Shown here: positions 1-39,466 of the stretch, in pieces | Layout: the number at the start of each line of letters is the position of its first letter | Numbering within the stretch: position 1 is the stretch's first letter | Source of the DNA: Anthoceros angustus | Taxonomy: Eukaryota > Plantae > Anthocerotophyta | Direction: 5' to 3' | Length of the DNA stretch: 64,000 bases | Assembly (NCBI GenBank): GCA_010909165.1 | Contig: MU008175.1 | Location: forward strand, 597,305-661,304 | Notes under the pieces: generated by a model | Told to the model about the DNA's origin: nothing | Database searches by the model: none | Seen by the model: only the letters and a program-made list of their open reading frames with translations | Program-made: the position numbers and the translations under genes

Positions 1-463
1 CCACCGCAAAAGCATGCAGGCGACGACCCAGAACAAGATCCTTCTGGACAACACATTTCTTCAGGACAGTATAAAACAGAGATCTGGAAACACGACCATC
101 TGTCTGCACCAGAACTCCCAGAGCCTCAACACCCTCAGTCACATGACCCTGATCACACAGCTCGCGCACGGTTTCAGCCGATACGCCCCTTTCATATCCT
201 GCGGGCCTGCAAGGGGTAGGATCATCCGGCAAGCTCCACCTGGATTTAGAATCACCAGGACCTATCGCCCACCAAGGTATTGGGTCCCAAGACACTTGTG
301 GCCGGGAAGGCCCGTCCCCAGCCAGGCATGCTCTTCCACGGGCAGGCTTTCTTGCAACGGTGCTGCACCTGGCTGTTCGATGCTTTGCCAGTGGCTGGTT
401 TCTGAACATCAGGTAAGCTGGAGCTCTTCCTACGATTCCTGATACCAAGCTCCAGCCAACCAT
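1..463 (-). CDS. 5' part of a PLS-class pentatricopeptide repeat (PPR) protein; runs off the window start
   Basis: Manual translation: the frame is open from ATG at 463 to base 1 and ends ...VRELCDQGHVTEGVEALGVLVQTDGRVSRSLFYTVLKKCVVQKDLVLGRRLHAFAV, the typical first P/L motifs of PLS PPRs. Absent from the ORF track because it has no stop in the window; start codon uncertain. Confidence 0.75.
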   Translation of the reverse strand, partial: MVGWSLVSGIVGRAPAYLMFRNQPLAKHRTARCSTVARKPARGRACLAGDGPSRPQVSWDPIPWWAIGPGDSKSRWSLPDDPTPCRPAGYERGVSAETVRELCDQGHVTEGVEALGVLVQTDGRVSRSLFYTVLKKCVVQKDLVLGRRLHAFAV

Positions 464-1161
464 GGCTCGCTGGAGCACGTCCCGGGGGACCGACAGGAGT
501 ACGATCTCAGCATGGCGAGAGCTGCAGCCTGCGTCTGCAAGCCTAAATTTGGACAGGCTCACTGCAGCATCGTGAGCACTGACACCGTTGTTGGTGGCCC
601 AAGGTTGGTTGAAACTGCCAGGATTCTTTCAGTGAACTTGAACATCTCTCAGCACCTGAGGCCATCTCCAGTTGGAGCGACTGGAGATGGCCCTATGTCA
701 ATTCATCTCTGTTCACCATGCATACTGCAAATGATTTACACTGACAGGCAGCATAGAACGAACTGTCGGAACAAGATAGCCTCGTGGACCCTGTTTTGGC
801 CATTACACTGGGAAGAACAGATTACACTCGTCTGGGACGCATAGCCCCGTTGTGCCCTGACGAGGCCCCCATTAAAGTCGATGGTCATCATACAAGCCAA
901 TCGAGAGATACCCATGCTAATGTGAGTAAATACCCGTGTATGTAAATACGAAGTTTTCTCAACTGGCTGGGCTAGAATTTTTAAAAGCCGAACGGATGAA
1001 TGAAATGGTGAGCCGTTCTGTTTGAGCTGTGATTTGTTCCCAAGATAGTGATCCGGGCACCCAGCTTAGGCAAAACATGAGCTGCCTTTTTTTACGAAGA
1101 ATTAAGCCAAGGCTAGATCCTAGGTATGACAAGAAATCATGTTAAGGTTGTGGGTATTCTG

Positions 1162-1213
1162 GGGTTAAGGATACATGGAAAGTAGGGTTAAGGATACATG
1201 GAAAGTAGGGTTA
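1162..1213. repeat. 23-bp tandem duplication (gggttaaggatacatggaaagta x2)
   Basis: Directly visible. Confidence 0.85.
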
Positions 1214-1806
1214 CAGATGCAAAGCATAGCAAAGCAAACTTAGGTGCTGTTTTCTTTCTGGCGGTAGGGATGCAGTTAGAGATCCAAGATTTATTAGATG
1301 TTGGATGAGATTTTCGATAAGACATTCTGGAACATAGTTCGCCAACTCACCGCGCCCTTCCTAATATACGGCTTTTCACGATGCATATATTGGTGTGGAT
1401 AGAATCACCCATTTCGTTTTATATAAAGATTCCTTGTCTATTTGTAAAAGAAAAGATATTAAAATATCTTAAAACTTTGTAAGCCTTAGAAATACCTGAG
1501 TCCATTACTTTCATTTTCTCGAAGATTGTTCACAAATATCTTTTATTTTCTACTATTTATTTTACGTTTTATTCTCTCAAAACTTCTTACTACTTTGGAT
1601 AGTTAATGCATTATGCTGAACATTCATAAAGGTTGATGAGGATTTAGACAGTTTGAGGTTTGAAATAATAGAAATTGTAAGTCAAGTACAAATGGGAATG
1701 TATGATACATTTTGAATAGTATTTCTCAAGCTCATGCTGTAGATCTTATACTCTCATAGGGCCATTCACCAATCAACATTGTTTGAGAGACACTCATGAA
1801 AACAAC

Positions 1807-2456
1807 ATGAAAGGCAACAATCGTTGTTATCAACATATGAATCTCATGATGGTATCAGTGTTAGTTATTATCACCAAACTTCATTTTGCAGAAGGTAATT
1901 AATTTGTGTTTTAGTATGAATACGTTTCAAGGTCCCATGTGATCTTGTGTTCACTTGTGTTTAGCTCCTGTACCTATCATAAATTTGACTGATTAAGAGG
2001 TTATATGCTTAGCACTTGACTAATTAATAAGCTACATGCCTAACATGGTTCAATGTGAAACTACATTAGACTGACAAAGTATTGAATTCAAGCACAGTAA
2101 TTGACTCCTTCAAGATTGCAGGTGAATGTAACGTGTACCCATATACTATCATGCGAGGTATACCTCAAGCTGATACCACTACTCATAGCTTAGTTCAATG
2201 TAATGAGTTTTGCAACAAAGAACAATGCCTAGTATTTACCTTCAACAAAGAAGGTTCATGTATATTATTTCCGAGTATTTCTTCTGACCCACAACGTGAT
2301 GACATAACAACAACTGTTACTAAGATAGGTAAGTATCAGTTGAACAAGAAAGCCTTGAATATGTTCGTGCAATTGTTTGAAATCACCTAGTGTATTGATC
2401 TGCTCTAACTTTTTGTAGATCCAAATGACACTTGCGTAACATGGAAGGTGTTTTGA
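1807..2456 (+). CDS. Small secreted Cys-rich protein with a single PAN/Apple-like domain, paralog 1 (exons 1807-1894, 2122-2328, 2419-2456; 110 aa)
   Basis: GT-AG phase-1 introns; hydrophobic exon 1 (LMMVSVLVIITKLHFAEG); mature ECNVYP...CNEFCNKEQCLVFTFNKEGSCILF...DTCVTWKVF* with C-x23-C-x3-C-x4-C-x10-C-x27-C. Structure is shared with two paralogs. Confidence 0.85.
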
Positions 2457-3217
2457 AAGAAACAAAGTATGAATAAAAATCTTCTATTACTAGTAATTTG
2501 TACAAAATAAATAGAGAGATTAATTATGTATTAGTCCTTCAAAATATTTCCTAATGCACGTTTTAGTAGAGTTATATATTATCATGCATCTAAATAAATA
2601 TAAAATATATACTATAATAATTAACATCAATTTAAATATACATCAGTTTCTTTTGCTCCTATGATAAATAAAGAGACTAAAAACATGATATAACATTATA
2701 AATCTTACAATTCAAAAAATTTTATATAAAGCATTTCCTAAATTGTAGACAGAAGTTCGGATATTTAATTTTGAGACGTATAATTAAAATATTTAATTTA
2801 ATATCTTAATATTTTTATTTTTATTATTCTAGAATCTAACTTTTTTCCGTTTTAGACTACTTTGTGCTTTATGAACTTGGATTGGAGTGCAATAGAAAGC
2901 AACAAATTAGAGTTATACGAGTTCGAGATAACTTCTCGATTGTATACTAGCCAAATTAAAAGAATGAGTGTTGAAGTATATTCTTTGTGCTGATAGTAAT
3001 AGCTTAAAGGGAATTTCTAGTTTTACATTATCTAAGCATCTTTTTCAGATATCGATCTAGATATTTTCTACAAAAATGGGTTCATCCCGTCTCATCTCTA
3101 CGTGTACAATAAAACGGTAGGACTCTATTTAGACGACATTTCATTCACTCATGTGATATTGTTTGCAGGATAATTGAATAGATTATTTAACTCAATTTTA
3201 TATCATTACCAACCAAT

Positions 3218-3767
3218 ATGAAAGAATGTCGAAGTAGTGATCACATAAAGTTTGGAGTTAAACAAGCTTTAATTTTTTTTATTATTATATCATATGCAAA
3301 ACGTTTACAAGGTAGCTTTTAATAACAATGAATATGATTAATCTACTAGAAACTATAAGATTTTAAACTCAATCCATCATGTAAACAAAAATAAGAGCGA
3401 ATAACTTGTATGTTGGATGATCAATGCAGGGGAATGTAATGTATATTTATACACGACAATGACTGGTATTCCTAGTTCAAGTGCTTGGACGGATACTATA
3501 AAAAGATGTAATGAATTTTGTCATGAATATCAGTGTCTAGTATACACATTTAACTCCTTCGGCACTTGCATTGTCTTTGATCAAATTTCATCTGTCCCTG
3601 AAAAAGATCCTAATACAACTACTGTAACAAAACTTGGTAAGTATTCTTCCGCATTAGCACAATTAAATTACATTGAATATTGATGGAATGTTCATGCGTA
3701 ATAATCGATAATTACATATCATATTGTAGACTATCACGACCTTTGTTCAGTATGGAAACTCTATTAA
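3218..3767 (+). CDS. Small secreted PAN/Apple-like protein, paralog 2 (exons 3218-3311, 3430-3636, 3730-3767; 112 aa)
   Basis: Same exon 2 (207 nt) and exon 3 (38 nt) lengths and intron phases as paralog 1; signal-like QALIFFIIISYAKRLQG; same six Cys; ends DLCSVWKLY*. Confidence 0.85.
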
Positions 3768-4581
3768 AAGAAACGCGCACTTGTTTTGGGAATATTTGAA
3801 GCTCTTGAGTTTTACAACTTAAACACGGGTAAATAGTTTTTCCATATAAGTATATACACCTATGTATGATTTAAATCAATCTCTTCAAATGACCGTTCAT
3901 TAACTTTTACTTTTTGTATTGTATACTTGGAACTTTTTGAAATATAGTTTTTGCTAAAAATAGGAGAGAGGTCCAAGTCTTCATATCTATTTCCATCAAA
4001 AAATGAGCCTCACATTTGAAATCTCCAAAAAGGAAGCTCATATGGCTGTTGTCCTCAAGAACACAAACACAACAATTACATATGTTGTCATGCCTTCTTG
4101 TCCTTCCAACCTATAATCTCTCTAAAAACTCGACGTCAACCAACATCGTTGCAAAAAAGCAACAATATACCACAATCCATGAGCACATTAATTTATCCAA
4201 GAATTCCTTTTATGCTACAATATTTTAATTATTTATTTTATGTCACTTGGAAATGTGTTTTCTTGTTTTGGACCAATAAGTTCCTCACATATTGGATTCT
4301 ATTGATAGAAACCATATTCTAGTGCAAATACTCAACTGAAATATGCTATTTTGAATAAAATAACTCTACGGAATTTTTGAATATTTTTGAAAATGTAAGT
4401 CCTTCTCACTTGAAGGTTTTATGAACCGTCATTTGCAAATTTTCTTGGAACAAGATCTTTTAACAGTATTGCGAGCTTGAAAACGGTGAAACTGATTACT
4501 AGTTCAATCTTCATCTCTTGATCAATTTGAAACCCATCCATTGTGGAATAAGAAGACATTGCAATTCGATTTGACTTATCT

Positions 4582-5089
4582 ATGACGATTTGGCATGGTT
4601 CCATAACAATCATTGTCTTTTTTACTTTTTTATTTCCTTTAATAAAAGGTAACTATGATCAATTTTACATTCTTTTTATGAATTACAAATGGAACTCTTG
4701 CGCTTATATATTGTTAATTGGCAGGTGATTGTACCTTATATCCTTTCAAAGAGATGGATGGGGTCTCTGATGGAGAATACGTCACCTCAGATATTGGTTC
4801 TTGTAATCGAGCTTGTAAGCAAACCGGTTGTTTGGTGTTCAAATACTACTCAGGAGGAGCTTGCATTGTGTATTCAGCAATCTCTTCCGCTCCAGTATCT
4901 AAGGACCATGTAGTACTAGTGACAAAATCCGGTAAGCTTTTCTTCTTTTTTTTCATTCGTTCATTAAATAGAAAAATATTAATTCATAAATTTATTGTAT
5001 TCATAAAGTATATATCTATGTTCTGACATATATCTATTTATCTGTCTACAGATGATATGGACGATTGCAATGTATGGAAAGTCATGTGA
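4582..5089 (+). CDS. Small secreted PAN/Apple-like protein, paralog 3 (exons 4582-4648, 4725-4931, 5052-5089; 103 aa)
   Basis: Signal-like MTIWHGSITIIVFFTFLFPLIKG; same exon 2/3 lengths and Cys spacing; ends DDCNVWKVM*. Confidence 0.85.
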
Positions 5090-5563
5090 AGAAATAGATA
5101 GAGAAATTGAGGAAACAATGGACAAAATATAAACCTAGAACATATATTTGAGAGTAAAGTCCTATCTATATATTTGCAAAACATAAACCTCAAACATACA
5201 TTTGATAAAATAGTTCAACTCTTCTGAAAAAACATGAAGCTCCACAGGTCTACCAAAAGTGGAGGGAGACCTTGATGAATTATTGCAAGTGTAAACACAA
5301 CTCAACCTGCCACTTTCGTGGCAGGTTAAGAATCACGCCAAATCTTAGCGTTCCTTGTATTGTCATGTTCTTGAGTTAACATTGAAGAACTCTCTCCAAG
5401 AAATGGTTATCTCATAGAAGATATGCATAGGTGATTGTTCTCTTATAGGTTATCTATTCTGGTCTTTGGGTTTGTTTATGGTGAAGCAAAAGAACCCTTC
5501 ACCCAAAGATTAAACTAGATAGATTGTCTAAAAGTAGTCCAATGGAGTGTCTAAAAGGAATAC

Positions 5564-5773
5564 TGTAATGGTCATGGGGCTAGGTTGAGCGGACCTACAC
5601 CCGGGAACGGTTCCACGCAAAGAAGATGTTTTGCTTAAGTTGAGCCGCGGGCTTTATACAAGGAAAAGACACAATCACGGGCCCTGATTGCGCCGTCTAC
5701 TTGGCGCGTATCCTTCGGCCCGTGATTCTAGTTACTATGCTTTCCCGACACGCTTAGGTCATGGGTCGTGACA
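5564..5773 (-). repeat. 3' LTR of the Gypsy element
   Basis: tgtaatgg...tcgtgaca, near-identical to 12815-13028. Confidence 0.93.
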
Positions 5774-6927
5774 ACTCACCTCGGGGGGAAGAAGAAGCTT
5801 CGACCACGAAGGGAGGAAGTGGAAGGCGGTGTTGGTGAAGGTACGGTCGCAAGATATCGGGAGCGTTCGTGAGGTGAGCCAAGGGTTCCCAGGTGGCATC
5901 GGTGAGGGGATACCCCTTCCACAGGACCAAGAATTGGTAGCGACGACGCACAAGGCGATGACGTAAAATAGCCTCGACTTCGAATTCGGGCCCAGGCGGT
6001 GGGAATGGGGGCGGGGCGGGGGCGAGGGGGGTACGAAAGGGTTTGAGAGAGAGACGTGAAAAAGGGATGCAGGTGGGGAGGGAGGCGAGCTCAAAAGCAT
6101 GAGGGCCAATCGGCAAGGATCCGTAGGGACCTAGGCAGGGAGGCTTGCGAACACCAAGAGAGGGGAAGGTGAGGCAGGCGAGAACATACATCGGCACATG
6201 AAGGAGTGCGGCGGTGACAATTGGCACAGCACGCCGGTGGGCTTCAGGCGCGCTGAGCTGTTGAATGGTGAGGCGGCGAGCCAGGAACTCTGTAGCAGTG
6301 GGGATAGCAGGGTGAGCGGGGAGGGAGGTGGAGAGACAGGTGCGTGGATGAAAGCCTTTGTTGAAGAGGAACGGGTAGACACCAATAGAGCTGTTGGGGG
6401 CGTTATTGTAGGCAAACTCCGCAAAGTGCAAGTAGGTGGCCCATTGGTCCTGGTGAGTGCCAGCATATGCCCGCAACATATCCTCAAGAACCTGATTGGC
6501 CTGTTCTGTGGCCCCGTCGGTCTGGGGGTGGAAGGCTGTGGAAAAACAGAGCTTAGTGTGAAGTCCCGCATGTAAAGCCTGCCAGAACCTGGACGTGAAG
6601 CGAGGGTCGCGATCACTTACAATAGAGCGGGGTAAGCCATGCGCACGATAGACAACCTTAAGGAAGATATCGGCAGTCTGCTCCGCGGTACAGGTATCCT
6701 GCGTAGGATGAAGAAGAACGTGGCGAGTGAGCTTATCGGTGAAAACAATAATAGCATTGAAGCCTTCGACAGTCCGCGGAAGACTGGTGATGAAATCAAG
6801 TGTCACCTGCTCCCAAGGCATCAAAGACTGGTAAGGGTTGGAGAAGGTCGGCAGGTACTTGCCTCGAAGGTTTGTTATGCTGACAAGCTGAGCATAAAGT
6901 GACGTAGTCAACAGTGTTTCTCAGCAT
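5754..6927 (-). pseudogene. Integrase core plus chromodomain of the Gypsy element
   Basis: PWEQVTLDFITSLP...IVSDRDPRFTS...HPQTDGATE; chromodomain EFEVEAILRHR...QFLVLWKGYPLTDATWEP; frameshifts present. Confidence 0.9.
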
Positions 6928-9158
6928 AGGGGTTTGTCTCCGAACCCCATTTTGGCCCCAACCATACAGAAATGCACATGTCTCATTTCACTTTTTGATT
7001 TGCGAACCCAGCCATGCATCCGAGCCCAAAGAAGACCTAATGCCCGTCCGTCACAAATGACGGACACACCTTTGTACCAAGTGGGGATGGTGGCGCACTT
7101 ATGCTCCAAAGAGCTGGAGTGCACGTCCCGGCACTTATACTCAAAGAGGTGCAATACACGGGTTTGGAGAGGGTTGCGTCAATACTTGTGTAGGCAAGCA
7201 CTTTCGTTCAAGTTGCTTGTGCACACTTGCTACCGCACCAACACTCACATCAATTCTCTTTTCAAACCCGTGATTCGAGCAATCCGCACGGTGGCATACC
7301 TCGACTGGCCCCTCTGTCGGAGATAAGCCCTTAGATCTGCGGCATTGGGCCCGGCAGAATTGGACAAGGTAAAGGATGGTGAGGCCTCCTCAACCGTTCT
7401 TGATCAAACTCTTGAGCTTACATTTCTTCTTGTCAAGTCCGTCGCTTTCAACCTTAATCTATCCATGGGTGGCACATGGAGCAAGTCGATCTTAAATTCA
7501 AAATCTCCTGGCGAGCTTGGCTATAGTTCTCTGAACACCTAGCGCCCGCAGTGCGTCACGGTGGGTATAGACAGGTCCTCCTTGAGCCTCACTAAATACT
7601 CGCCATTTGGTCAAAACCCCATTTCGGGCGACCCTCTTTCTTCGATACTCTGGCTCTCACTAGGGCTCGGTGGCAGCAGATGCTCTCTTATGCTTGTGTT
7701 TCTACATCCGAGGCTTTCATTACTCAAGGAAAAATCATCTATTCTATTTATTTTCTTGCTTCTCGCAAAACATTGTGAAACATTGTCGTCTTCAAAAGGT
7801 TGGCCATTAGAAACCACCATCATACATGTCGAATTTTGGAAAATGTAGCTCATCTAGAAACCAAGGCCTATGCATCTACGTGCATCAAACTCGAATGAGC
7901 GGACATTTGGCGCACCAATCAAAAGAGATCCATTGCAAGTCATCGGAAGGGCACATAGAGTAAGGCCAAAAGGTTTTACATGTTGTATACAAAGCGAATG
8001 TGGGAATATAACATCAACCAACAAATGATTTTCAAAATAATATTCATGACTTTACTAGATACCGGATGATTTACAAATTTTTCAAACCACTAAAATCAAC
8101 ACTCCATCCTAGTATTGATACCTCTAGGTTGCTTAAGATGGAGTTGTTACAAAGTTTTCAAAGCGCCAAAAAAAGCAAACCATCCTAGTTCTAATCCAAC
8201 CCAAGAGTGCATAACCAGTTCTCAAAGCACCAAAGTCAAGCACCCCATCCAGTACTGATCCGAGGGGCTTAACCTTGAGTTCTTATGCCATTGAGTCTAT
8301 GCACCTATCCGATGTTTCTACAAGACAAACAATAAATATACATGGGACGTCCGGCGCATCCACTCCACCATTTCCATCTCGCGGACGCCCACAAGATTGG
8401 GGTCTCTCTCTCAATCGCCGGACGTCCGTAGAGCTCCAATGTGCGACGTCCGGCGCATTGTTCCAATTCCTTCTATGTTTTCACTCTTTTCACTCTGGAG
8501 ATCCGGGGTTGTGTACTCAATGCACGACGTCGGCGCTACTTTTAGAGTCGTAGTTTGGTCCTCTCGAGATGGCCATGATCGCTATCGGTTAATGTTCTCT
8601 CACAATTCGCGGACGTCCGGCGCGACTCGCCAATGTGCGAGCGTCCGCATTGCTCCAATTCCCTGTTTTCACTCTTTTCACTCTAACAATGGAGATCCGG
8701 GGTTGTGTACTCACGTGCAGGGCGTCAGCGCTACTTTCTAGAGTCGTAGTTTGGTCCTCTCGAGATGGCCATGATCGCTATCGGTTAATGTTCTCTCACA
8801 ATTGCGGACGTCCGTGTGGTTGCTCTTTTACTGCAATTGCTACTTTTGCGTGTTGGTTGCGGACGTCCGTAGCAGTTTCTCTTGGACTAATTTTGTTTGG
8901 TTTTGCTCACCTCACGCTAGGAAGTACTATCGCTGAAGAGGTGTTTAGGATTCCTAGCACCTATTAAAATCCTTGAAATCCCTTCCTTGTGAAGGTGAAA
9001 TCCATGAACCTTCTTGGCTTCAACCTATTAGCGTAAGTATTCACGAGAAAATAACATGGTCAATGTCTTTCTTTACATGTCTAAAGAGTGGTTTTGCTAA
9101 AGATGATGCATTTGGCCCGTTTTGGGGTCATTTTGGTCTTTAGGGACCCAAACCCCTT
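6928..9158. mobile_element. Non-coding insertion inside the integrase gene, probably a non-autonomous DNA transposon
   Basis: Splits the integrase zinc-binding region; ends carry a short inverted repeat aggggtttg...caaacccct; contains internal repeats and no recognisable protein. No TSD identified. Confidence 0.55.
8410..8813. repeat. ~200-bp imperfect tandem duplication with recurring GGACGTCC motifs
   Basis: tagagtcgtagtttggtcctctcgagatggccatgatcgctatcggttaatgttctctcacaatt occurs twice. Confidence 0.85.
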
Positions 9159-9551
9159 TAATGGAGAATAACCCTATCTTTGAGACACCTGTCGCCGGAC
9201 ATCGTTGAGCTGGGCCAAAAGTAGGAATTGAGCAGGCGGTGGTCTTGAACACCTTGATGTCCGGCGGTGTGAGCCTCCTCAATGTTTTGGCGATGGATAT
9301 GTGGCAATTGGGGGACAAATAAGCGCTGCTTGTACCGATAAACCATCCAGTTGCCAATCCAGCGAGCCCTCTGCGGATAGCCTTGTGTCTTTGTCAGTGT
9401 GATCTACGCTAAGGGCCTCACGAATCTCCGCTTGCCAGGGTGGCTGGACCTGTACCTCAGTGACAAGAGTATTAGTCTGCAATCGACTAAGGGCATCATC
9501 AGCCTGATTCTGCCGCTCTTTTACATAACGGATAGTATACTGATACTGTTG

Positions 9552-12296
9552 CTAGAACTCAAGCCACCGGGCCTGCTTGCGAGAGAGATGCTGTTGTGTC
9601 TGTAAGTAGAAAAGGGGGCAATGATCTGTCTCGAGGTGAAAAGCTACCCCCTCAAGAAAACAACGCCAGTTTTTTAATGCAAGTACCTGGGCCAGCGTCT
9701 CCTTTTCCCTTGTCGTCCAATTTAGTTCAGCGCCCTTAAGCTTCCGCGAGAAGTAGGCCACAGGCTGCCTGCCCGCTCCTTGGTCCTGCTGTAGAATGGC
9801 CCCTGTCGGATGCGTGGTAGCGATAAATGGCACGGACGGGTCAGGGTATGCAAGGACGGGAGCGGTGGTGAGTGCCGGCAGTGGCGGCCTCCTATTCAGC
9901 CCACGCCATACCACCTAACGCAATAAAGCGACTATCTTAGCGAAACCCATGATAAATTTTCTATAATAAGATGTGAGGCCAAGAAAACTTTGCACATCAC
10001 GAGTTTGTGATGGAGTGGGCCATTCTCGGACCACCTGTACCTTAGTTGGGTCGACCCGAATGCCGGTTTCGTCAACAATGTGCCCAAGATACTCTACCTG
10101 TCGCTGTAGTATCTCGCACTTCGGGGCTTGGACATACAGTTGATGCTTCCTGAGCCGTGACAAGGCCTCGCATAGGTTCTTATCGTGCTCCGCCTTATCC
10201 CTACCATAAACCAGTATGTCATCAAGGTAGACCAAAATACCTTTGTTGATCAGGCCATGAAAAACATCGTTCATGAGCGTTTGAAATGATGCAGGGGCGT
10301 CTGTCATGCCAAACGACATAACAAGCCACTCATAGTGGCCATACCTGGTATTAAAGGCCGTCTTCTCTTCATCTCCAGCAGCAATCTTGATCTGGTGATA
10401 GCCACTAGCTAAGTCCAATTTTGAGAAGGAGCGGGCCCCTGCCAGTCCCTCCAATAGTTCGTCAATCCGAGGAAGAGGAAATGTATTCTTCTTAGTGAGG
10501 TTGTTCAACCCCCGATAGCCAATACACATACGCAACTTACCGTTCTTCTTATGCAAAAACAAGATGGGTGCCCCATATGGCGATTTGGAAGGTCTTATGT
10601 AGCCTTTGCATAGCAGTTCTTCCACCTGCAGGGTTGACTCCTCAATTTCCAACGGGGACATCCTGTATACTGGTCGATAGGGGGGTTTATGAAATCCTGG
10701 CACAAGCTCAATCCGATGGTCAACACTCCTGGATGGTGGCAACCCCTCAGGCAGGGTGTTGACAAGGACGTCCTGAAAATCAGTCATGATTTTAGTAATC
10801 CCAGCATCACCTTCAGGGGCAACAAGCTTGTCGGGTCATGTAGGGCAGAGCCTCTCCTTGATGACAAACAAGGTCATGACGCGCCCTCCCCTTTTCCTGA
10901 TGCTCCTCCGCATGCTCGTGGTCGAGACCTTCTGAAACCTAATCTTACTACCGTTGCGAAGTTGCTCCCCCCTTACAGTGTATCGCTTTCCCTGTAGCAC
11001 AAGAGACAACTCGTGTTGAGGCCAGGTGATGGCTGGATTGCGGTCTTCGAGCCAAGGCATGCCTAAAATGGCATCGTGTCCATTCCCCAATTCTGTTATG
11101 ATGAAGCTCACCCTTTCGCAGTATGCTCCCATCCGTAAGTTTACGGGGCGGCTGTGCGTAGCTCTCCCTTGTAGCTGGCCATTAGCTAACTGCACAGCCC
11201 CACAGGCTTGCCCAATATCTAGGCACGCCCTCCTTGCAAAACAACGGGACAAGAAATTAGTACTCGCACCGCAATCGATTAAGATTCGGCAAGGTATCCC
11301 GTTGACATGGCCTTGCATGAATAGCGCGTCTCGAGGCTTGATGCTTTTTTTCGATGCGACGGTGCTGCTCCGACCCAACATGCGACCCTACTGCTGGGGC
11401 CCGTTTCACGATGATGCGGCAGGCGTCACTTTGCAAAGTTCACTTCCATTACCTCCTCCTGCCGTACGCCTTCCTCCCACGTCCGACTCCTCGTGCGGGA
11501 AGTGCATGGTAGTCGCGGGTGCGATGCCCCCGCGTATAGCCTTGGAATGCCTGACCGCCGAGGCTCCATCGGAGTGGCCTCCCCCTACCCGGCTCCGAAC
11601 GTCTTAGTTGGCTTGTACCAGCCTTTAAACTCTTGATACAGTGCGTCGGACTGCTGGGCAGTCGTGACGGCCTCCTCAAATGTCTTGCACTTGGCGTGCA
11701 TCACCACATCCTTCCGCACAGCATGCTTTAACCCACGGGAGTACCGGTCCAACTTCTCTTCGTCCATCATCCCAAGGATACTCATTACCAGCTGTCGAAA
11801 CTCGGTGGTATAGGCTGCCACAGTGGTGCGCTACTGCAGGCATGTGAGCTTCTCCCTGGCGACCTGTCGTTCCTCGGCGAGCAGAACGAACTCACGCACC
11901 ATCACAGCAGAACTCGGCGAGCTTGTAGGTCGATTGCCTCCCGCGTGTCGCGCATCTAGAATTGACCCACCCACCATAGTAGGGCAGCTCCCTTAAGAAA
12001 CGTGGCTGCTACCCTCACATACTGCTGAGGGTCCGTGCCGCTGAGTTCTAGATAGGCTTGCACCTGGTGCACCCACAATTCAACCTCTGTTGCATCTCCC
12101 ATCCCCTTGAGGTGCCCGGCTTAGACACCTTGGATCCTACGTTAGCCACTTGCGTGGGCCGTTGGCTGACCTCCACCTCCAGCTGGGCCACCCTCGCGTT
12201 GCTCTCCGCGCACTGACGCTCCATCTGCCTCATTTGTTGGTGTGCCTCATTCAAGAGTCGCGCGAGCTGGGCAGCATCCAGCGTGCCCTCACCCAT
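9552..12296 (-). pseudogene. gag-protease-RT-RNase H of the Gypsy element (disrupted)
   Basis: ORF fragments carry gag (YTTEFRQLV...LDRYSRGLK), DCGA protease, RT (SPYGAPILF, FPLPRIDELL, YLDD) and RNase H (PVAYFSRKL, ETDH) motifs. Confidence 0.92.
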
Positions 12297-37487: not shown

Positions 37488-39466
37488 ATGGGCCGAGGCT
37501 GGCGTGCTTGCTGCCCGGAGGCAGGACTGCTGGCCCTCATCCTCTTGGGCTCCGTGCTGGCTGTGAGTTCCCAAGCATGTCTCAAGGACTTCAAGGCCTC
37601 CATTACGGACCCACAAAAAAAATTGCTCCCGTTGTCAGAATCACCGAGTTCCTGCAATTGGACTGGAGTCACATGTCGACACCCCGAGGCCAGTGATGTC
37701 TCCCAGGTAGATCTATCACAGCTCGGGCTTCAAGGGGAGCTCCGGCTTGATCTTCTCAAAGCTTGTGACGGTCTCTCCATCATTGACCTCTCCGGCAACT
37801 CGTTTTCAGGCTCCATTCCTGATGACTTGGCTACGGCATTCCCTAACCTTGTGTCTCTCGACTTGTCCGACAACAATATCCAGGGGGGGATACCAGCTGA
37901 CATTGTGATGTGCCAGTATCTGAACACGCTGGCTTTGGACAGGAATCAATTGGTGGGCACCATCCCTCCAGAACTCGGGGATCTTCCGAGGCTCCGTACT
38001 TTGAATTTGTCTTACAACAGACTTGAGGGGATCATTCCGGCCACTCTGCTCAATCGTTCCGATTTCCTTGATGGCACACCAATGTCCTACCCTGAGGACG
38101 CCTTCATCGGAAATGCAGGTCTTACTGTTCCTTCTGCTTATTGCAAAATGTTTTCTCGCACGGCCTGTGAGAATGGAAGCAAGTCTATTAAGATGTGGCT
38201 GGTGGCTGCCCTTATCCCGAGCTCCCTGGTGCTGTGCTTGGTGGTGCTGCTTGTCTGCGTGGTACTATGGAAGCGAAGTCCAGGGAAACCTGCAAAGTTG
38301 AGCGGACCAGAGTCCGCGAAGCTCATACAGTTTACAGCAGTGTCCCCCATGGAAAACAGGGGCACAGAGCCAGTCCGGATTCTGTCTAAGAGGCTGGGCA
38401 GTCGGCGAGGATTGATAGTCGAGGACCTCTGGACTGCCACAGCCAACTTCAGCAAGGAGCATGAGGTCGGGTCTGGGCCCTTCAGTAAGGTGTACAAGGC
38501 AGAGCTGCCAGATGGGAAGGTGGTAGCTATCAAGTGGCTCAACTTGGAGAACAAAGGTGACCCCGAAATTATCTTGCCACGCTTCTCGAAGGCGGTGGGA
38601 GCTATCAGCCACTTCCGCCACCCAAATCTGGTTAGAACGCTTGGATATGTTGCGAAGGCGGATATGATGTTGCTGATCCTGGACTACATGCCACAGGGAA
38701 GCCTTGAAATGCTCCTGCATGGGAGTCCACAGTTGCAGCACATGGTGTATGACTGTCAGCTCAGTTGGGATGAAAGATACGGCATTGCTCTGGGAGTGGC
38801 CATGGGATTGAAGTACCTGCACCAAGAGAGTCCAAGGCCTTTGGTGCACTCTGACCTTAATCCCAGCAACATCTTGCTGGACTCTGACTTGGTGGCGCAT
38901 GTTTCCCCATTGGGCGTAGCAAAGCTGGTGTCAGAGAGTGCTGGGTCCAACGCCTCTTACTGGACCATAGGCTACACTGCTCCAGGTATTGGACTCCTCT
39001 ACGCCACCTGTTGCCCATTTCTTCTTTTCTTGTTTGAGGTTTAAGACTTGACTTTGTGTCTATGTGTGGGGCAGAAAACGTGTTCTCCATGACTGGCTCT
39101 CCGAAGGCTGATGTGTACAGCTTCGGCATCCTCCTCCTTGAGCTCATCACCAGACAGAGGCCTACAAGCTCCTTGTTCGGGGATGGAGTAACCATGTCCC
39201 AGTGGGTGAAGGATGCTCTGGCTAAGCAGAATTTGCTGAGCATCCTGGATCCAACACTTGCGCGCAGCTGGAACTTCAACGATGCTCAACTGCGGGAAAT
39301 GAGCTTGGTGTGCAGACTCGGCTTGTCGTGTTCCCAAGAGGCCCCATCAGCAAGGCCGGACATGAAAGCCGTGGTTCACATGCTACAACAACGTGGGAAA
39401 AACAGGGAGAAGCTCTCCTCCAAAGTGGCTGCTGTGGAGGAGATCCTTGAAGTGCTGGTAGAGTGA
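37488..39466 (+). CDS. LRR receptor-like kinase 1 with 5 LRRs, probable pseudokinase (exons 37488-38985, 39075-39466)
   Basis: Signal peptide, LRRNT (CNWTGVTC), LRRs, TM and kinase with VAIK; HSDLNPSN, and SPLG where SDFG is expected; intron after GYTAP. Confidence 0.92.

Follow-up and report, generated by a model that had tools for sequence, protein, structure and literature searches.

A tandem cluster of three putative genes for secreted single-domain PAN/apple proteins in the hornwort Anthoceros angustus

The DNA analyzed here is a 64,000-nt stretch of the hornwort Anthoceros angustus (contig MU008175.1 of assembly GCA_010909165.1, positions 597,305 to 661,304 of the forward strand; hereafter the window), and our subject is a cluster of three plus-strand genes within positions 1807 to 5089, whose predicted products we read as small secreted proteins with one PAN/apple domain each. 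Every gene consists of an exon for a signal-peptide-like region and two further exons of 207 and 38 nt (Table 1). We verified the coordinates by script and thereby reproduced the strand, exon layout, and intron phase given in the initial annotation, an earlier reading of the same DNA from the letters alone. The coding sequences amount to 333 nt in gene 1, 339 nt in gene 2, and 312 nt in gene 3, all of which are divisible by three, and the span from start to stop is 508–650 nt per gene. All six introns (76–227 nt) follow the GT...AG rule and lie in phase 1; GTAAG or GTAAT occurs at four of the six donors, and T-rich tracts precede the acceptors. No other start codon stands between the ATG of each exon 1 and the in-frame stop before it. 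Where translation of gene 1 truly starts is uncertain, because a four-codon upstream open reading frame (ORF; ATG AAA ACA ACA TGA, 1796–1810) overlaps the first ATG out of frame and further in-frame ATGs follow at 1837, 1846, and 1849: Initiation at one of these later codons would produce a shorter, more typical signal peptide. Small multi-exon genes of this type are easily overlooked by annotation. The mechanical ORF list contains the exon-2 ORFs only (2082–2390, 3417–3683, and 4718–5026), just as the initial annotation had remarked. We found no other coding sequence between or beside the three genes in positions 1–5500, and Rfam and tandem-repeat scans of positions 1–6000 returned nothing bearing on them. 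Directly behind the stop codons (2457–2466, 3768–3777, and 5090–5099) stands AAGAAAC in genes 1 and 2 and AGAAATA in gene 3, which may be a common 3′ motif or a product of chance in AT-rich DNA.

Table 1. Positions of the three-gene cluster, the AT-rich island around it, and the neighboring features in the window.
Feature	Position	Strand	Remarks
AT-rich island	1251-5500	.	~4.2 kb, GC 31%, contains the whole cluster; flanks ~50% GC
Gene 1 exon 1	1807-1894	+	ATG and signal-peptide-like region, 29 codons + 1 nt; GT donor at 1895
Gene 1 exon 2	2122-2328	+	207 nt, phase 1-1, predicted PAN/apple core with Cys 1-5
Gene 1 exon 3	2419-2456	+	38 nt; AG acceptor; D-PNDTCVTWKVF-stop (sixth Cys, C-x2-WK, TGA)
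Gene 2 exon 1	3218-3311	+	ATG and signal-peptide-like region, 31 codons + 1 nt
Gene 2 exon 2	3430-3636	+	207 nt, predicted PAN/apple core with Cys 1-5
Gene 2 exon 3	3730-3767	+	38 nt; D-YHDLCSVWKLY-stop (sixth Cys, C-x2-WK, TAA)
Gene 3 exon 1	4582-4648	+	ATG and signal-peptide-like region, 22 codons + 1 nt
Gene 3 exon 2	4725-4931	+	207 nt, predicted PAN/apple core with Cys 1-5
Gene 3 exon 3	5052-5089	+	38 nt; D-DMDDCNVWKVM-stop (sixth Cys, C-x2-WK, TGA)
Ty3/chromovirus LTR retrotransposon	5566-13029	-	near-complete; ~480 nt downstream of gene 3
Long terminal repeats (LTRs) of the Ty3/chromovirus element	5566-5774 and 12817-13029	-	213-nt, 95% identical
Integrase + chromodomain ORF of the Ty3 element	5754-6911	-	
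Reverse transcriptase (RT) ORF of the Ty3 element	9915-10787	-	
Aspartyl protease ORF of the Ty3 element	10836-11381	-	
Nodulin-like/NFD4 transporter-type gene	15215-17223	-	split over two ORFs
PAP2 phosphatase gene	18465-19544	+	
LRR receptor-like kinase genes, two paralogues	37488-39466 and 53505-55586	+	first long ORF stops inside the kinase domain

In all three genes, exon 2 translates to C-x23-C-x3-C-x4-C-x10-C and ends ahead of a junction aspartate, and exon 3 adds x4-C-x2-W-K-x2-stop, so that the full spacing C-x23-C-x3-C-x4-C-x10-C-x27-C-x2-WK is found three times out of three. The predicted products comprise approximately 103–112 residues, of which about 80 make up the single PAN/apple domain behind an N-terminal signal-peptide-like region. 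The indel-free length of 80 residues and the identities previously counted by hand proved exact: Genes 1 and 2 agree at 44/80 positions (39/68 in exon 2, 4/11 in exon 3, and the junction aspartate), genes 1 and 3 at 30/80 (24/68, 5/11, and 1, respectively). Exon 2 of gene 2 is 57% identical to that of gene 1. A tblastn comparison of the copies yields E = 2e-23 and about 1e-13, likewise without indels, and no further matches to them within the 64-kb window; the resemblance is far greater than chance would produce. The exon 1 peptides contain hydrophobic cores with 10-residue Kyte–Doolittle means of 3.22 (LMMVSVLVII, gene 1), 2.71 (LIFFIIISYA, gene 2), and 2.85 (ITIIVFFTFL, gene 3), and in each of them small residues come after the core, just ahead of Cys 1; judged by this arrangement, the peptides fit a cleavable signal peptide. 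Conservation among the mature parts is concentrated in the CxxxC helix, the CLVF(T/K)(F/Y) strand, ISSxP, VTK, and the C-x2-WK tail. Variation is greatest in the loop that links Cys 1 to Cys 2, and a specificity-determining role of its surface would be a reasonable guess.

We then consider which fold these residues encode. The genes of the window were folded and searched exon by exon, and the model of gene 1 accordingly covers exon 2 with Cys 1 to Cys 5. The initial annotation had recognized PAN/apple domains by their cysteine pattern, and this assignment is upheld by Pfam, by profile searches, and by the predicted structure, which are not fully independent of one another. Exon 2 of gene 1 matches Pfam PAN_1 (PF00024) with 28.1 bits (E = 1.8e-6), above the curated cut-off of 21.4, and exon 2 of gene 3 scores 19.5 bits (E = 9e-4); no other Pfam family, including PAN_2 (PF08276), was detected in the three exon-2 peptides at E values up to 10. 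Of the PAN families, it is hence PAN_1 that is recovered, fully for gene 1 and narrowly missed for gene 3. A profile built from the three exon-2 peptides retrieved 12 matches at E ≤ 0.001 from 1.84 billion cluster representatives. Among the 10 of these that were scanned with Pfam, seven are multi-repeat PAN_1/PAN_4 proteins, with E values down to 2.7e-10; two of the 12 (P0006 and P0010) look spurious, being repeat or low-complexity proteins. Run against the PDB, the same profile weakly matches each of the four factor XI apple domains and aligns Cys 2, 3, and 4 with cysteines of these domains. The AlphaFold2 model of gene 1 exon 2, computed from a 22-row alignment, reaches a pLDDT of 87 and a pTM of 0.71 and contains strands at residues 2–5, 16–19, 37–41, 45–49, and 62–67 as well as a helix at 23–32, in agreement with the antiparallel β-sheet and the single α-helix packed on it that characterize PAN/apple domains. 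Nearly all of its top 50 Foldseek matches in the PDB are PAN/apple modules with a probability of 1.00, among them plasminogen (TM 0.87, rmsd 1.5 Å), the PAN of a Colletotrichum copper oxidase (TM 0.84), the N domain of HGF (TM 0.81), the apples of factor XI and prekallikrein (TM 0.72–0.80), and an Eimeria PAN module (TM 0.73), which agrees with the apple fold anticipated from the cysteines. The ESM Atlas likewise returned PAN clusters, by features (0.93) and by shape as well. With these lines of evidence combined, we regard the PAN/apple domain as very probably the correct structural reading. In apple domains, four core cysteines (C2-C5, C3-C4) are joined by an outer pair, C1-C6, which ties the C-terminus back; all three window genes have six cysteines at the spacing customary for this arrangement.

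The known PAN systems differ considerably in how closely they resemble the window proteins. PAN_1-type modules such as the N-terminal domain of plasminogen, the N domain of HGF, the apples of factor XI and prekallikrein, and the microneme PAN lectins of Eimeria and Sarcocystis have the fold in common with the window protein (TM 0.72–0.87), as well as the six-cysteine layout, in which a CxxxC helix motif precedes a strand rich in aromatic residues; they are extracellular, which is predicted for the window proteins, too. Known members of this type bind glycans or proteins. They are, however, of animal or apicomplexan origin, mostly multi-domain or multi-repeat, and only 15–24% identical to the window protein, whereas the window proteins have one domain each, belong to a land plant, and carry the conserved C-x2-W(K) tail. 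Closer in architecture are the small single-PAN proteins of Pseudomonadota and rotifers, which form ESM Atlas clusters of the same stand-alone size (76–105 aa; TM 0.84–0.86), and the 85-aa single-PAN protein P0011 of the nematode Bursaphelenchus, which matches the exon-2 profile at E = 8.4e-4. Because such proteins exist in bacteria, rotifers, and a nematode, a stand-alone PAN architecture is not new to biology; none of them, however, comes from a plant or is close in sequence, and the window family is set apart by its three-exon structure and its AT-rich island. The third group comprises the S-domain (G-type lectin) receptor kinases and S-locus glycoproteins of plants with their PAN_2 domains. 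They share superfamily, plant origin, and, by prediction, extracellular location with the window genes, which in contrast lack a PAN_2 match (E up to 10) as well as any lectin, epidermal growth factor (EGF), transmembrane, or kinase exons; the nearest kinases are of the LRR type and lie more than 32 kb off. The connection to S-domain receptors drawn in the initial annotation is therefore not supported, since PAN_1 rather than PAN_2 is matched and no lectin or kinase parts are attached.

The sole full-length relative that we retrieved is P0002, a 96-aa gene call on the 1108-nt Logan contig SRR33208242_10609 (L001). It was found by an exhaustive search of the representatives and by a word-index search with a four-sequence alignment, while a word-index protein search with gene 1 exon 2 alone gave no match; P0002 is the one true relative among the approximately 15 billion predicted proteins searched. 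Metagenome contigs of JGI and viral contigs contained pattern matches only and no relatives. The ORF on L001 spans 110 uninterrupted codons (106–438), is preceded by three in-frame stops at 22–30, and encodes, in this order, a hydrophobic N-terminus, Cys 1 to Cys 5, and ...VKT-D-STDG-C-TDW-SLI-stop. P0002 is 29–38% identical to the three exon-2 peptides and resembles the window proteins in its six cysteines, the C5-x27-C6 spacing, the C-x2-W near the C-terminus, the hydrophobic N-terminus, and the AT-rich coding sequence; it differs from them by two extra residues in the C1-C2 loop, by the absence of the lysine after the tryptophan, and by its uninterrupted ORF. This ORF reads across both intron positions of the window genes and shows AG/G or AG/A at both, like exon junctions. 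Most simply, L001 would represent the spliced mRNA of a stand-alone single-domain protein; alternatively, it may be an intronless genomic copy. The contig also contains a run of 17 A at 784–800, about 345 nt past the stop and followed by 300 more bases. Either a genomic A-tract or a chimeric junction behind a poly(A) tail could explain this run, so that L001 may be mRNA or DNA. The stand-alone, single-domain design with a signal-peptide-like N-terminus put forward in the initial annotation is thus supported by the separate start and stop of each gene and by the closed single-domain ORF of P0002. The suggestion that the family is undescribed also stands, given a single relative among the proteins searched and no published description of free PAN mini-proteins in plants in the literature searched. 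The absence of the family from protein collections nevertheless says little, because the best database relatives of a neighboring LRR-kinase ORF, which mostly come from seed plants, are only 26–39% identical to it, an exact look-up of this ORF gave no record, and therefore neither the proteome of this genome nor that of a close relative is part of the collections.

The divergence of the three copies indicates their age and the constraint on them. Between copies, pN amounts to 0.31–0.47 and pS to 0.67–0.86: Synonymous sites are saturated, and blastn finds no DNA-level similarity between the copies any more. Despite this divergence, three start codons, twelve splice sites, eighteen cysteines, three Trp-Lys tails, three stops, and the lengths of exons 2 and 3 are intact. 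Because replacement differences stay below the saturated synonymous ones and all these features are preserved, the reading frames have been under long-term purifying constraint, and by this pattern of substitutions we take the copies to be old tandem paralogues rather than relics. As pS exceeds 0.75 in two of the three pairs, dN/dS is not computable for these pairs, and we dropped the diversifying (positive) selection suggested in the initial annotation for this reason; what the copies show is old divergence with constraint. The same conservation bears on the question of whether the three 207-nt exons, which are symmetric (phase 1-1) and can be joined with the frame preserved, might instead be spliced together as parts of one larger gene, whose secreted product would contain three PAN-like repeats. 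We consider this extremely unlikely: Upstream of each 207-nt exon lies a separate hydrophobic exon with an ATG and a phase-1 donor, and a stop-bearing 38-nt exon of its own follows after 90–120 nt. Moreover, the 38-nt exons have kept their length, the junction aspartate, Cys-x2-Trp-Lys, and the position of the stop despite saturated synonymous divergence, which argues that they are in use, because unused sequence would not remain so conserved. If they were skipped, each repeat would be left with five cysteines, one of them odd, and introns of approximately 1.1 kb would be required as opposed to the 76–227 nt seen. Finally, the sole relative is a closed single-domain ORF that bears the tail.

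The cluster lies in an island of conspicuous base composition. In 250-nt windows, the GC content of the island varies between 20 and 39%, and the GC3 of the exon-2 sequences is 21–35% compared with 48–72% in neighboring genes and the retrotransposon; the coding sequence of L001 is equally AT-rich (GC 31%). We rejected methylation-driven decay as the cause of the AT-richness, as CpG depletion is no stronger in the island than in the flanks (observed/expected ratio of 0.61 vs 0.54–0.79 around). Such a difference in composition, with 31% GC in the island and about 50% around it, is what one would see if the island had been acquired from a bacterium, virus, animal, or protist with a small PAN gene and then been duplicated in place, and such an acquisition is also favored by the match of the domain to PAN_1 rather than to the plant PAN_2 model and by the shape search, whose nearest small single-PAN clusters come from bacteria or rotifers and not from plants. 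A foreign origin is nonetheless quite unlikely in our assessment: All three old paralogues have retained spliceosomal phase-1 introns, no close donor was found in the 1.84 billion representatives, the JGI metagenome contigs, or the viral contigs, and old duplications without compositional drift toward the host, together with the equally AT-rich L001, fit a family trait better. It would, moreover, concern the source of the genes only and is compatible with our preferred explanation of their present function. Because the paralogues are old yet still AT-rich, the composition points to a standing trait of the family rather than a recent import.

Composition and expression together raise the further question of whether the three units are silent relics, that is, unexpressed genes, or pseudogenes that have stayed intact by chance in an AT-rich island that neighbors a retrotransposon and is possibly heterochromatic. 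The extreme AT bias and the Ty3 element approximately 480 nt downstream are in line with this, as is the finding that no RNA run containing the stretch was identified. The outcome of our search of RNA runs for the cluster, in which one doubtful run gave zero contigs, fits expression limited to certain tissues or conditions and silence equally, and the available runs probably span few tissues or conditions. Silent relics are very unlikely, however, as the three ORFs, twelve splice sites, eighteen cysteines, and three stops have remained intact after saturated synonymous divergence; replacement changes clearly below the synonymous ones require long-term purifying selection, and CpG depletion does not exceed that of the flanks.

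We conclude, with a probability of roughly 0.75, that the three genes are old, separate paralogues in tandem, that they belong to a lineage-restricted plant family, and that each encodes a secreted protein with a single PAN/apple domain. Several observations weigh against this conclusion. Taken alone, exon 2 of gene 2 has no Pfam match, and that of gene 3 is slightly below the PAN_1 cut-off. The sixth cysteine and the tail of the window proteins, located on the separate exon 3, are outside the folded model, and the C1-C6, C2-C5, and C3-C4 pairing is predicted by analogy. The full-length AlphaFold model of P0002 has a pLDDT of 65.7 with both termini under 50, and its best PDB matches, although PAN modules (Eimeria 1hky, SML-2, and HGF N), appear only at E values of 0.035 or weaker. 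The signal peptides were judged from hydrophobicity alone, the strong AT bias could mark a silenced or foreign island, and the RNA search described above identified no run that contains the cluster.

If the three genes are indeed separate paralogues for secreted proteins, their products would be directed into the secretory pathway, where the signal peptide would be cleaved off and the mature part would fold as an 80-residue PAN module with three disulfides. Exon 2 would contribute Cys 1 to Cys 5 and the whole core of β-sheet and helix; the 38-nt exon 3 would contribute the conserved tryptophan and the sixth cysteine, which is predicted to tie the C-terminus to Cys 1. PAN/apple modules act as binding modules in Sarcocystis SML-2, HGF, and factor XI. 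By analogy, the hornwort proteins would be small extracellular modules that bind a glycan or a protein; the partner could be a polysaccharide of the wall or mucilage, the surface of a microbe, or the ectodomain of a receptor. The conserved core would then serve as a scaffold, with specificity depending on the variable C1-C2 loop. We give such a putative binding function about even odds. The roles in gamete recognition, symbiosis, or defense proposed in the initial annotation are speculative. A more specific scenario, which we deem unlikely, is that of a PAN lectin-like secreted family of the hornwort lineage that is expressed only under special circumstances, for instance when cyanobacteria colonize the slime cavities or during sexual reproduction, and that binds a surface glycan of a partner or a receptor, the AT-richness marking an unusual origin or chromatin state. 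The negative outcome of the RNA run search is a lead toward this scenario but no evidence for it. The most strongly symbiosis-induced Anthoceros gene is a SWEET16/17-clade transporter (PMC8075897). If the window proteins turn out to bind partners outside the cell and only under particular conditions, they would qualify as candidates for recognition at the cell surface, in a lineage that is known to live in symbiosis with cyanobacteria. With this cluster, a land plant gains a family of predicted secreted single-domain PAN/apple proteins distinct from the PAN_2 domains of S-domain receptors: a well-supported gain in annotation and not a new mechanism. The 4-kb AT-rich island, which has outlasted the old duplications, is in itself a puzzling feature of base composition.

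The window is plant DNA and contains, besides the cluster, the genes and elements listed in Table 1. Each of the two LRR kinase genes probably contains an intron inside its kinase domain. The ORFs of the Ty3 element are split by stops or frameshifts, and between its integrase and RT lies a 68-nt direct repeat (8540–8607 and 8736–8803) whose copies are 99% identical and 196 nt apart. A 96-nt unit in three tandem copies (13033–13320) that are 86–91% identical adjoins the upstream LTR of this element on its outer side. Further Ty3 gag sequence occurs elsewhere along the window.

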